Assembly: GCA_965112735.1 (NCBI GenBank)
Contig: OZ218956.1
Coordinates: forward strand, 2,790,001-2,854,000
Source of the DNA: Phaeosaccion multiseriatum
Taxonomy: Eukaryota; Protista; Ochrophyta, other classes
Direction: 5' to 3'
Length of the DNA stretch: 64,000 bases
A program made the position numbers and the translations under genes. Each line of letters opens with the position of its first letter. Position 1 is the stretch's first letter. Under the pieces are notes generated by a model, which had not been told where the DNA came from, did no database searches, and saw nothing but the letters and a program-made list of their open reading frames with translations. Below, piece after piece: positions 3,442-63,442 of this stretch.

Positions 3442-6134
3442 GCATGTGGGTATATGTCCGTGTGTGTGCCTCCCCCACCCGTCCCGAGCACAGCACGCCG
3501 TCCTGACACTGGACATTGTGCACGCAACTGCTGAGAGACCCCGGCCCTCTTCCCCCTCAGACCGAAAGAGGAAAGGTGAGAGAGAAGGAGGGGACAGAGC
3601 GAGAGGGAGAGGGGAAGAGAGGAGGAAGAGAAGAAGGAGGAGGGGAGAAGAGGTCTCCTCTCTCTCTCTCTCTCTCTTCTCAGACTTTTCCGTTACACCT
3701 CTCTCGAGACAGAGACATGTAACTAACATTAACTGACATGTAACTGACATGTAACTGCTTGTCATGATGCGTCGCCATGCTCCCCCTCACAAGATGCACT
3801 CCTCAGCTCCCCCTTCCTCTCCCCCTCCCTCCTCCTCCCCCCTGCCTCCCTCCCTCCTCTCTCTGTTTAGCCCCCCCCGGTGACGGCCTTGCACTTGAGG
3901 GCCAAACCCCGTCAGCGAAGGCCGCTGAAGCTGCAGAAGAAGCAGCAGCAGCCAAAGCCACGCCCTCTGCCCCTGCCGACCCGTCAACGCTGGAGATACT
4001 CGAGTGGCTCAAGACCAGCCGCGCTCACGTTAGTAACCAAGGCGCATGCACGCACACGCACACGCACACGCACACACACACGCACACGCACACGCACACA
4101 CACGCGCACGCATGCACGCACTCACGCACCGTCTTTGACGTTGGATGGGTTGCTTCTCTCTCTCTCTCTTAGTCTCTATCCTTTTTATCTCTATCACTCC
4201 GTCTCTCTCTCGTCCTCTTCCAACTCTTTCTCTCACGTACTCTCACTCTCACTCCCCCTTCTCTCTCTCACGGCGGGGCAGAGCGACAACATACCCGGCG
4301 ACGCCCCTGCTGCATCACGAACTGGTGTACCACCAACTGCTGCCCCGACCCAGGGGGGTGCCAAAGGCCTGCCACCCGGGGGGGCAGGACCCAGGGGGGG
4401 CGCCCTGCCTCCTCCTCGCTGCGACGCCGCCGCTTGGATCGACTTGGCCTTCAGGGTACGTACTAAGTACTAGTATGTAAGAGCCGGTCTGCAAAACGTT
4501 CCGTGGGGATGATTGAGGATTCTTCCCTTTTGCAATGCCGATGCCAATGCAACCTTCCCCCCTCTCACCCCCTCACACATACACACACGTATATATGTAC
4601 ACGCACGCACACACGCATCCTCCCCCCCCCCCTCTCTCTCTCTCTCTCTCAGGAACCCTGGGCGGCTTGTGACGAGACCATCCACCCCGTGGACTTGGCC
4701 CAGGCTCGCTACCTCGCCTCCCAGCTGAGATCGTTCCTCAAGAACATTCCCAGGGACCACCGCAGAGGGCTTGGCTTCGATGATGTACTCGTGGAGGTAC
4801 TCATGGTCACGCCCCCTCCCTCCTCCATCAAACATGGTGCTGGTGCTGGTGCTGGTGCTGGTGCTGGTGCAGGCTCCGGCAGGCTGGGGTCGGGGCCTGC
4901 TTCACGGGCCGGGTCAAGGCCGGGGTCGAGGGGGGGGGGCGACGCGCCGAGTGGTCAGCCGCAGGCAAGACGCATCATTCGACTGGGGCTCTTCCGCCAT
5001 GCGTCTCGGAATAGCACGAATAGTAACACTAGTAGTAGAAGGGGGGGGCGGGGTAGTCATAGCAAAGGCAGTGGGCATAGCAATGGTAGGAGTAGTGGTG
5101 TGGGCGGTGAGGGGGGTGACGACCCACTCACCTTCGAGGAGCGGTTGCTGCAGGAGGCCCAAACGCGAGGGGACCCAAGTACAGCAGGCAGCGGCAGCAA
5201 GAGGAGGGGGAGGGATTTGGAGGCAGATGGGGCGGCTGCAGATGCCAAGGGCCTCAGCGACTTTGTGCGGAAGCTTTCCGTCCAGGTAAGGAACAGGGGG
5301 TGTGAGTGGTGACTTCCCTCCCTTTCCATACGCCTCCACACTACTCTCGCCCCTCCCAACATGTGCGCAATCAGTGAAGAACTGCGCCATCGGTATGCCT
5401 CTACTCTTGCTCCCCGTATGCCTCTACTTTTGCTCCCCGTATGCCTCTACTCTTGCTCCCCGTATGCCTCTACTTTTTCTCCCCGTATGCCTCTACTCTT
5501 GCTCCCCGTATGCCTCTACTCTTGCTCCCCGTATGCCTCTACTCTTGCTCCCCGTATGCCTCTACTCTTGCTCCCCGTATGCCTTTACTCTTGCTCCCCG
5601 TATACCTCTACTCTTGCTCCCCGTATGCCTCTATTCTTGCTCCCCGCATGCCTCTACTCTTGCTCCCCGTATGCCTCTACTCTTGCTCCCCGTATGCCTC
5701 TACTCTTGCTCCCCGTATGCCTCTACTCTTGCTCCCCGTATGCCTCTACTCTTGCTCCCCGCATGCCTCTACTTTTGCTCCCCGTATGCCTCTACTCTTG
5801 CTCCCCGTATGCCTCTACTCTTGCTCCCCGTATGCCTCTACTCTTGCTCCCCGTATGCCTCTACTCTTGCTCCCCGTATGCCTCTACTCTTGCTCCCCGT
5901 ATGCATTCGTGAGCCCCCGGGGCCGGCCTTGGAAAGAGCAAGTTGTGAGCTGTGTGTGTGTGTGTGCTTGCCGCTCTCCTTCCTCCTGCACCGGGTATGC
6001 CATGTTTTGTCATCCCCTGTCTACATTCCCCCCTCCATCCTCTGCTGATGCCAGCCACCACCGCCTTTGCCCCCTCTTGCTCGCGCCTGCCTGCCTGCCC
6101 GTCTACCTGCCTGTCTGTCTGCTTTCCTGCCTGT

Positions 6135-30673: not shown

Positions 30674-31251
30674 GTGCTGGGCGCCCCCGGAATGGTCAAC
30701 CCGCTGGAAATCTCCTGCTGGCTCACAGACCTCTCGATGCCGCGGGAGAGCTTCTTCAGCTTGCGGATCCGCTTGGTCGCCCAATGCGTCTTGGCCGGCT
30801 GAGCCGAAGAAGGATAGCCTGGTGCGGACTCTGACTGCCGCCGACTGAAAGCAGAGGAGAGGAAAGGGTCTTCCGGCCCGGCGACAGCAGCAGCACCAGT
30901 GGAATAAGATACTGTGGCCACCGTCGCCCGAGGGAACAGTCCGCCTGACATTCTATTCCCGTCCCCAGAGCCTGGTCCTGGTCCTGGTCCACCGCCACCC
31001 CCCCCCTCACCCTCCTTGGTCTCGCCGGCATTGATGGCGGCACCGCCATTATCCACCCTCACCACACCCGAGACGACGCCCTCCGATGACCCCAGAATGT
31101 CCCCTGTCGTGGACCTCCTTTCCTTCTTTCCGGTGGCATCCTTGACAACCGATGTGGATGACGACGCGATTCTTGACATCCTCCCCCCCGAGGCCTCTGG
31201 CACGTTGCTGGCATCATGTCCCTGAGCCTCTTTCGAATGTGCGCAACCCAT
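14387..31251 (-). CDS. Soluble adenylyl cyclase-like (ADCY10/sAC family) protein: class III cyclase C1+C2, STAND P-loop NTPase, winged helix, helical/TPR-like C-terminus
   Basis: C1 VLFVDVSGFT...GGDVECFAGDALL; C2 WLGELR, FINK|VMMDEKGLSLIFAFGTPG, EYALVGDTVNLAARL; LVGR and Walker A EADAGMGKT; Walker B VVAIDGLHYTD; CEGNPFFIREM; LKVASVVG and AYGMLLHSYRRKLH. About 15 exons with consistent splice phases. Stop is at 14387 if the 14496-14732 intron is spliced, otherwise at 14549. Confidence 0.92.
18469..20567. repeat. 49-bp minisatellite, about 43 near-identical copies, inside a cyclase intron
   Basis: Unit CTCCACCACCACACATCACCTTTCTACTCTGTCTGACAT(G/C)GCCTTGCTT; no spacers. Confidence 0.98.
26025..26712. 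repeat. Cyclase intron with an AG-rich higher-order repeat (26025-26490) and a 20-bp tandem repeat ATCGCCCCCCATCCAGTGCC x3.5 (26634-26712)
   Basis: Directly visible. Confidence 0.9.
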
Positions 31252-31627: not shown

Positions 31628-33646
31628 ATGCTTGGAGGAGGCCCCTTCTTCAGCGTCCTCGTCCTACTGTGTCAGACGAATGGCTCGGATGCTTTCCCTT
31701 TGAAGGCCTATGGAGCCCATGGCCGAGTAGGCAGAGGGAGAGCAGGCGATGAAGGAAGAGGAGGAGGAGGAGGAGGAGGAGGAGGGGGACGAGGAGGAGG
31801 AGAAGGGGAGGGCAGGGCGCGAGGCGGAGGAGGAACAATAGCAGCAGCAGCAGCAGCAGGAGGAGGAGGAGGAGTAGCCGCAGGAGAAGCAGCCGCTTCA
31901 GTAGCCGCTGCTGGAAGTGCAGGAGGAGAAGGCACTGCACTGTCACCCGACCCCTCCTCGCTGAGCTTCTACCAGACCTTCGGCAGTCGGGGCGCCACGA
32001 TCCTCAGCAAAGATCCACTTATTGTCCACATCAGAGGCTTTCTCAGCGAGGTTTCATGTAAGCAACTCATTAAGAGTGCCGAGCAGAGGGGGATGGAGGC
32101 GTCGACGGTGGTGGACGACATTGAGCAGGCAAGTCTATCTCTGAATGTCATGGGAGAGACTATCCGCTGGAGCCCCAAAACCCCCTCCACTCGCTCTCCC
32201 TCTCTCTCTCGCTCTCTCGCTCTCTCCTCATTCACTCGCTCTCTCTCTCTGTCTCTCTCCTCACTCACTCTCTCTCTCCCGTCTCCAACATGCAACCCCG
32301 CAGTGGGAGGGCAGGAGCAGCGCGACCTGCTGGCTGAAAGACGGCGGGGGAGGTGAGGAGGCTGACGGGGGGGCGGCCACCGCAGCGGTGATTGTGGCGC
32401 TGGACGAGAAGATCGCGCGACTGACCCGGCTTCCTCCCAGCCACCAAGAGAGCTGCCAGGTCATTCGGTATGGAGAGGGGCAGTCCTACGAAGAGGTGGG
32501 TCAGGGTACAGAGCAAATACGCCCCAGCGGCCCGGAACCGGCAACACGTCTCTGTCGCTCTCCGAGTCTTGTCAAAGAGCAACGACAACGAATTGATAGG
32601 CTTGCGTCCGCCATGTTGCTTCGGGTCTGGTGTGACTGACTGACTCACTGACATATGAGTATACGCATCCACCCACCCCCCGTCCTTCGATAGCACACGG
32701 ACCACCTCGACAGTTTCAACGAGTACGCCTGCGGAGGGAGGCTCTGCACGTGCCTCGTCTATCTCAGTTGAGTGCAACAACCTTATTAAACCTTATTAAA
32801 TCCCAGTCCTTGGGGCTCAGTCGCCTCTCCCAAGCTTCCTTCCGCCCCCAATGGCAACAACGCAACAACGTAGTTGAAGCTAGAACTGGGGGGGCGCTTT
32901 GAGGGAATGCTCACACGGAGCTGCCTCTCCTTTCCTCCCTCCCCTCTGTATCCTCTTCTCGGTGCATCCGCCCCGCTCCTGCAGACAGGTGAGAAGATAT
33001 GGAGAAGCGTGTGTGTGGGGATAGGCTTATGATTATATACGCGTATACCCCCCATGCCTCCCTTTCTTGTCCTTGCTTAACTTTTCTCCATTCGTCGCCC
33101 CTCTTCTCCTCCTCCTCTCCTCCTCCTCTCCTCCTCCTCCTCCTCCTCCTCCAACACCTCTGTTGTAACCGTAACCCTTCCTTCTCCCCAGCGGAGGGGG
33201 CTGTGACTTCTCAGGCGGTACGACTGCCTTTCCCCTGCTCCCCCACCAGCCCCCTGTGCCGATGGCTGGCGACGCCTTGTTTTGGTACAACGTCAAGCTG
33301 CCAGTGCAAGACCCGTCCTCCATGTCGGTGGAGCCGAGAAGCCTACACACGGGCACCCCAGTAAGCACGGGCATTAAGGTAGGGGGACCGGACTCATCCA
33401 CCTTGACATCATTTTCTAGTTTTGCTTCAATTCCCTTCCTTGCTTCTGCCGAAATGACCCACGCAACCCTTACCTCACTGCCTCACTACCTCACTGCCTC
33501 ACTGCCTCACTGCCCAGTACGCGTGCAACAAGTGGACGCACCCTTTGCCGTTCAAGACCGCACTACAGCCGCGGCCGGAGGCGGCACCGCAAGGCGAAGG
33601 ACAAGGCGAAGTCGAAGCCGAAGTCGAGGACGACGAAGGAGGATGA
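31628..33646 (+). CDS. Prolyl 4-hydroxylase alpha-like 2OG-Fe(II) dioxygenase with a possible N-terminal signal peptide
   Basis: LSKDPLIVHIRGFLSEVSC, RSSATCWL, ESCQVIRYGEGQSYEEHTD (HxD), GGRLCTCLVYLN, GGTTAFP, GDALFWYN, SLHTGTPV..GIKYACNKW. Exons 31628-32128, 32304-32495, 32694-32766, 32985-32988 (microexon), 33192-33378, 33518-33646. Confidence 0.9.
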
Positions 33647-33731
33647 TGAGACGAGACTCAACCGTTCAGGCTGAACCGGGGGGTGGATGATGAGACGAGA
33701 CTCAACCGTTCAGGCTGAACCGGGGGGTGGA
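33641..33731. repeat. 44-bp tandem duplication overlapping the P4H stop codon
   Basis: GGATGATGAGACGAGACTCAACCGTTCAGGCTGAACCGGGGGGT occurs twice in tandem. Confidence 0.9.

Positions 33732-61293: not shown

Positions 61294-63442
<2,149 letters not shown>

Follow-up and report, generated by a model that had tools for sequence, protein, structure and literature searches.

The 64,000-nucleotide (nt) window analyzed here, positions 2,790,001 to 2,854,000 of contig OZ218956.1, comes from the stramenopile alga Phaeosaccion multiseriatum and is part of a 67-Mb assembly of 22 contigs. It is intron-rich, has a G+C content of about 59% and carries, at 31628..33646 on the forward (+) strand, the model of a predicted prolyl 4-hydroxylase (P4H) gene, one exon of which is likely to be a microexon of only four nucleotides. 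The model has six exons and encodes 361 amino acids with a signal-peptide-like N-terminus; unless another strand or location is given, all features below are on the + strand and in window coordinates. Exon 1 (31628-32128) and exon 2 (32304-32495) are separated by a GC-AG intron (32129..32303, donor CAG|GCAAGT), and the spacing across this join equals that in the orthologues. Exon 3 (32694-32766) encodes HTDHLDSFNEYACGGRLCTCLVYL, with the HxD iron ligands, and ends with the first base (A) of the following codon. The candidate microexon ACAG, exon 4 (32985-32988), completes an Asn codon (A|AC) and starts a Ser codon (AG|C). Exon 5 (33192-33378) supplies the third base of this Ser codon and then encodes GGGCDFSGGTTAFP...SLHTGTPVSTGIK, including the distal His and the Lys that binds 2-oxoglutarate (2OG), and exon 6 (33518-33646) runs to the end of the gene, stop codon included. 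The intron upstream of ACAG is 218 nt long (32767..32984) and has its acceptor CAG at 32982-32984. The downstream intron is 203 nt long (32989..33191), with the donor CAG|GTGAGA and the acceptor CCCCAG.

When the exons are joined from their window coordinates with ACAG included, they form an open coding sequence (CDS) of 1086 nt, or 361 codons. When 32766 is joined straight to 33192, the frame is shifted and a premature TAA is met at 33362..33364. The sequence-only reading of this locus had described exon 3 as ending in GTC TAT CTC A at 32766 before GTTGAG, had placed ACAG within CTGCAG|ACAG|GTGAGA at 32985-32988, and had started the next large exon with the C at 33192, and all three descriptions agree with the DNA, the last of them as CCCCAG|CGGAGGG. 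Its translation of the ACAG-containing join, CLVYL-N-S-GGGCDFSGGTTAFP, was likewise reproduced, within an open 361-codon CDS that keeps the HxD...H...K core. Its more general claims were only partly borne out. Direct joining does shift the frame at the 33192 acceptor, but not at a second AG five nt further on, where a canonical GT-AG join is in frame. The predicted loss of the distal His and of the Lys upon skipping is similarly restricted to the 33192 acceptor; because the second AG is in frame, skipping is not necessarily all-or-nothing. The suggestion in that reading that ACAG could act as an on/off splicing switch found no support. Finally, ACAG is needed for an intact core under the best-supported model, but the in-frame join at 33195-33196 and a one-base lesion or error at 32768 also reach such a core.

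Judged by its sequence, the predicted product is a member of the prolyl 4-hydroxylase/2OG-Fe(II) oxygenase family (PF13640, P4Hc type). Its nearest named homologue, P0001 from Tribonema minus, carries the annotation Fe2OG dioxygenase; the joined model is 52% identical to it (E 2e-61) and matches a profile of the homologues with an E value of about 1e-72. A phmmer search with exon 5 retrieved 11 proteins, with P0001 at the top (57% identity). P0001 itself matches solved prolyl 4-hydroxylases from Bacillus anthracis, PBCV-1, Chlamydomonas and human (E 2e-18 to 1e-9), and PF13640 is passed by the homologues P0001, P0008 and P0012. Exon 5 alone gave a weak match to the PBCV-1 prolyl 4-hydroxylase, and a Pfam search with single exons, which are short queries, gave no match. 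The iron triad is present, as HTD in exon 3 and as the His of SLHTG in exon 5; these residues align with the HxD and H of P0001 and, via P0001, with those of the Bacillus anthracis P4H 5IAX. The Lys binding the C5-carboxylate of 2OG lies in GIK|YACNKW, which spans exons 5 and 6 and is aligned with GTKYVCNKW in P0001 and GEKWIATQW in 5IAX. No paralogue of exon 5 was found in the 67-Mb genome.

The splice signals on either side of ACAG are the strongest in the 425-nt gap between exons 3 and 5. They were scored with matrices trained on 33 introns inferred from adjacent kinesin-motor exon matches in the same genome, in which the donor consensus is CAG|GTRAG and the acceptors follow a C/T-rich tract. 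A 30-column acceptor matrix proved to be overfitted, giving low scores to the P4H gene's own acceptors, and a pooled-tract acceptor model was used instead. The donor of ACAG, cag|GTGAGA, scores 14.1 bits, exceeding 33 of the 33 training donors. Its acceptor scores 8.0 bits, the highest value in the gap, the four other acceptors of the gene lying at 5.1-7.1. The runner-up sites in the gap reach 2.1 bits (donor) and 1.0 bits (acceptor), the AG inside ACAG excepted. Moreover, among the 31 AG...GT/GC candidates in the gap that would fix the frame, ACAG has the highest pyrimidine fraction before its acceptor (0.72) together with the consensus donor GTGAGA. The two flanking introns contain further elements of the expected kind: in the upstream intron, a branch-like CTCAC at 32910-32914 and, after it, 62 nt of pyrimidine-rich sequence free of AG (32921-32982), and branch-like GTAAC motifs at 33165-33169 and 33171-33175 in the downstream one. 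The CCCCAG acceptor (33191) is the first AG after these motifs, 17-23 nt past them, in the sense of the acceptor scanning rule (PMC1431707).

The arrangement flanking ACAG exceeds chance. Composite AG|N|GT sites in which both scores are at least as high as those of ACAG, at any of ten frame-fixing spacings, occur twice in 327 kb (both strands), ACAG included, and the chance expectation per 425 nt is 0.0026 by both scores and 0.009 by the summed score. Two simpler counts gave similar values. Counting plain motifs (70% pyrimidines or more, YAG, 1/4/7/10/13 bases, GTRAG) predicts about 0.005 sites per gap, and a shuffle test with the 4-base spacing predicts 0.86 per 128 kb, or about 0.003 per gap, ACAG being the sole match in the window. 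The 39 kinesin inter-exon gaps (13.2 kb) contain no composite site, even at a lax cut-off.

The microexon, through A|AC, supplies an Asn at the position following YL, and an Asn follows YL (or FF) at this position in Tribonema P0001, in P0008 and P0012, in an environmental relative (metagenome contigs L017/L018) and in the Bacillus anthracis P4H. Other P4Hs (P0003, P0010) have a Ser there. At the Tribonema minus locus (L016), the region from HTDH to CNKW is a single exon, reading ...CLIYLNGGDDFDGGRTAFP, and the metagenome contigs read ...CGGRLCTCLIYLNDDYT, after which come one intron and then GGRTVFP.

From these data we consider it likely that ACAG at 32985-32988 is a real 4-nt coding microexon, probably constitutive, lying between ordinary introns of 218 and 203 nt. 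This model is favored because its flanking signals are strong and non-random, because it restores the frame by way of the well-placed CAG acceptor, and because it restores the Asn of the homologues. Each of the two introns would then have a donor, a branch-like motif, a pyrimidine tract and a CAG acceptor of its own. Each is probably recognized as a unit, because the genome has short introns (median about 285 nt), and the two are probably removed sequentially, because a 4-nt exon is too small to hold 3′ and 5′ splice complexes simultaneously. The predicted mRNA would read CTC AAC AGC GGA, translated as YL-N-S-GGGCDFSGGTTAFP, with the distal His and the 2-oxoglutarate-binding Lys staying in frame; its predicted junction is CTATCTCAACAGCGGAGGG, and skipping to 33192 would give CTATCTCACGGAGGG. 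Inclusion of ACAG is most likely constitutive.

Several observations weigh against the microexon. First, the donor of the upstream intron is atypical. This site, CTCA|GTTGAGTGC (32763..32775), scores -5.7 bits in the normal register as TCA|GTTGAGT, under all training donors. Read one base further on, as CAG|tTGAGT, the same site reaches 9.7 bits without the +1 column, a value equalled at only 11 of 17,906 GT sites (0.06%). This match in the shifted register is not due to chance, and such a near-perfect match is the expected leftover of a G>T change at the first base of an intron. Second, the microexon is not conserved at the two orthologous loci compared: the Tribonema orthologue is intronless here, and L017/L018 have a single intron four codons downstream. 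Third, homologue profiles do not discriminate between the three protein versions that the DNA allows. The microexon protein, YL-N-S-GGG, scores 230.6 bits with the profile of all homologues and 233.8 bits with that of the closest four. The Ser protein obtained by joining 32767 to 33192 scores 230.4 and 231.9 bits, and the Arg protein obtained through the AG at 33195-33196 scores 231.7 and 233.4 bits, all three being at most 2 bits apart. With ACAG the loop between YL and GG is four residues longer than the family minimum, and the neutral score of the microexon protein arises because the gain of the Asn is offset by this longer loop. Fourth, word searches that used exon 1, P0001 and exon 5 found no transcript or protein of the same species and no close relative, nor did a full representative search, and neither scanning with 28-mers at the DNA level nor protein-guided scanning of metagenome contigs detected the gene or close relatives. 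The collections searched also contained no close relative of the genome. Finally, a canonical in-frame join that skips ACAG was found in a systematic list of such joins, and an argument from intron size had to be dropped: at 425 nt, a single intron is within the range of the 33 inferred introns (104-1008 nt, median 285), and its size is uninformative.

The upstream donor is explained either by pairing with U1 in a shifted or bulged register or by a G>T change in the donor at 32768. The first explanation has precedents in the shifted and bulged 5′ splice sites described by Roca and Krainer (2009), Roca et al. (2012) and Tan et al. (2016, PMC4856993). For sites resembling /GUU..AGU, pairing in shifted and +2/+3 bulge registers has been validated in human cells, where it is rare, the +2/+3 bulge accounting for about 0.03% of sites (PMC4856993). 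Like them, /GUUGAGU is a poor partner of U1 in the normal register; here, 8 of 9 positions are paired if the register is shifted by one, or +1 to +6 are paired if one U is bulged. Validation of these registers is limited to human cells. In the microexon model, TCA|GTTGAGT is probably bound by U1 in one of these registers, and cleavage would stay at the G at 32767. The 5′ end of the U1 small nuclear RNA (snRNA) of this genome is the canonical ATACTTACCTG (L041:1501). The lone U1 snRNA candidate (L041:1501-1675, G000:C4:4597269-4597443) scores 57.8 bits, below the Rfam gathering threshold of 69.5, and has an Sm-like AATTTTTTG. We may also speculate that a G>T change at 32768 was tolerated historically as ACAG could restore the frame, which would account for both the odd donor and the strong signals around ACAG.

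The most serious alternative takes the G>T change as the whole explanation. In this case the gap would be a single 424-nt intron with a donor that once was CAG|GTGAGT, the T at 32768 would be either a base error of the assembly or a genuine G>T lesion (or the result of a lost G), and ACAG would be a chance decoy. The mRNA would read CTC AGC GGA, giving YL-S-GGGCDFS and the predicted junction CTATCTCAGCGGAGGG, and a genuine lesion might make the gene a pseudogene of very recent origin. The donor one base later, at 9.7 bits, is comparable to the upper third of real donors and belongs to the 0.06% of GT sites mentioned above. The join from 32767 to 33192 is in frame, its profile score is the same as that of the microexon protein (230.4/231.9 bits), and a Ser at this position occurs in the other P4Hs noted above. 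However, this explanation requires a rare event at one particular base and, in addition, a composite site that arose by chance (0.003-0.009 expected per gap) and by coincidence codes for the conserved Asn. The assembly contains exon-sized open frames as long as 1,635 codons, which point to a low error rate, and the remaining exons are intact, with all catalytic residues present. A lesion or error at 32768 is in our view an unlikely explanation, although the one to be taken most seriously after the microexon. The likelihoods assigned here to the different models rest on rough priors, including the low apparent error rate, and the remainder goes to other explanations.

We regard as distinctly improbable a second alternative, in which no microexon is needed and a single canonical 430-nt GT-AG intron (32767-33196) ends at the second AG (33195..33196, in a GAG context 5 nt past the CAG) instead of the CAG at 33189-33191. 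The protein would be YL-R-GCDFSGGTTAFP, that is, YL-R-GCDFSGG in frame with the donor at 32767, and the predicted junction of its mRNA is CTATCTCAGGGGCTGTG. Besides its canonical dinucleotides and its reading frame, this join has in its favor a score of 8.0 with a crude acceptor matrix, versus 5.1 for the CAG, mostly owing to the G after the AG. In profile score (231.7/233.4 bits) its protein equals that of the microexon model, and the loop comes nearest to the family's in length. On the other side, the CAG 5 nt upstream is well placed. Where AGs lie close together, it is the preceding base that settles which one is used, GAG being the weakest (Smith et al. 1993, summarized in PMC1431707). An Arg at the position of the Asn in YL-N was seen in none of the homologues retrieved. 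Moreover, the second AG leaves the strong composite site at ACAG unexplained, and it shares the poor donor with the microexon model, which means that nothing is gained there.

Little more than a marginal chance is given to the idea that ACAG is a regulated, frame-setting cassette with three outputs: the active enzyme with YL-N-S, a truncation through the CAG, and an in-frame Arg variant through the GAG. If this were true, prolyl hydroxylation of secreted or cell-wall proteins would be tuned by a splice choice at four bases.

The weakest alternative, and a very improbable one, is that the long-read assembly has an indel error in its G5 run at 33196-33200. The run does sit at the very beginning of exon 5, long-read errors are most often homopolymer indels, and an extra G would put the 32766-33192 join in frame with Thr-Glu after YL. 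This error would, however, leave both the strong ACAG site and the odd donor unexplained and replace the conserved Asn, and its prior is small for one specific run of five bases, in view of the long exons that are open elsewhere.

Three other ways of accounting for the gap were tried and rejected. An origin from introners or repeats is contradicted by the flanking introns, both of which are unique in the 67-Mb genome. A copied intron cassette was rejected on the grounds that the shared part consists only of CT-rich low-complexity sequence, with an alignment score of 26 against a shuffle mean of 17.7 and a maximum of 29. Recursive splicing at CAG|GT offers no solution, since exon 3 would again be joined to 33192, with the frame still broken. 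Kinesin exon pairs lacking a single-intron solution were considered as evidence for frequent microexons and left unused, several of them having internal stops or unclear boundaries.

If it is real, the ACAG exon has its closest counterparts in plants, in which internal coding exons of 1-15 nt are known, down to those of a single nt in APC11 and VPS55 (Yu et al. 2022, PMC8831610). These plant microexons are missed by annotators, and their flanking introns are thought to be removed sequentially (PMC8831610). Like them, ACAG consists of a few bases between normal AG and GT signals, has a strong GTRAG donor and keeps the frame. The plant microexons, however, are backed by RNA-seq and reverse transcription PCR and are conserved across land plants (PMC8831610), whereas ACAG is a candidate predicted from DNA sequence, is absent from the two nearest orthologous loci and occurs in a stramenopile alga. 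We found no literature on microexons in stramenopile algae. The neuronal microexons of animals (3-27 nt) are mostly multiples of three, alternatively included and dependent on dedicated enhancer proteins. ACAG resembles them in being very short and in having strong flanking signals, but it is 4 nt long, the frame is lost when it is skipped and there is no sign of regulation. Tandem (NAGNAG-like) acceptors offer a further comparison: exon 5 starts with two AGs, of which the second is in frame for the join without the microexon. This arrangement differs from NAGNAG sites in that the AGs are spaced by 5 nt, not 3, and the two acceptors differ in frame, with one of them productive for each upstream choice.

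A somewhat similar situation is found in a MutS-family gene elsewhere in the genome (L046, G000:C1:2142300-2144400, approximately 1017-1790). Its Walker A exon ends with GPNCGGK|GTGAGA and the next exon starts at cccccAG|TACCTTC, leaving a Ser codon two bases (AG) short. It was rejected as proof of the splicing of tiny exons in this alga, as the mRNA would look alike for a 2-nt exon and for an odd acceptor followed by the AG as exon sequence. In the MutS-family gene the extra AG abuts the next exon; ACAG is instead about 200 nt from either neighboring exon, and for this reason it offers a clean locus for an RNA test of microexon splicing in stramenopiles. The type of mechanism is not new, and ACAG is probably a fresh example of an ultra-short coding exon. 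The finding matters mainly for annotation: should ACAG be a real exon, the enzyme would come out broken or truncated when this gene is annotated automatically, and the same probably holds for other genes of the genome.

The composite-site scan also returned two candidate short exons in other parts of the window. One is a 15-nt candidate at 3561-3575 (+), ccccctcAG|ACCGAAAGAGGAAAG|GTGAGAG, between the CT/GT-repeat-rich introns of another gene. The other is a 13-nt candidate at 62181-62193 (+), cccaatAG|AGCATTATATCAA|GTGATGG, which lies behind a long C-rich tract and 5′ of an exon starting at 62266.

Two further features border the P4H gene. A soluble-type cyclase gene on the minus strand (start at 31251) is divergent from it, and the two start codons are about 380 nt apart, which suggests that the two genes share a promoter region. 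At the other end, a perfect tandem duplication with a 44-nt unit (33641-33731, 2.1 copies, 100% match) starts at the P4H gene's final sense codon and its stop codon and extends into the 3′ untranslated region of the gene.

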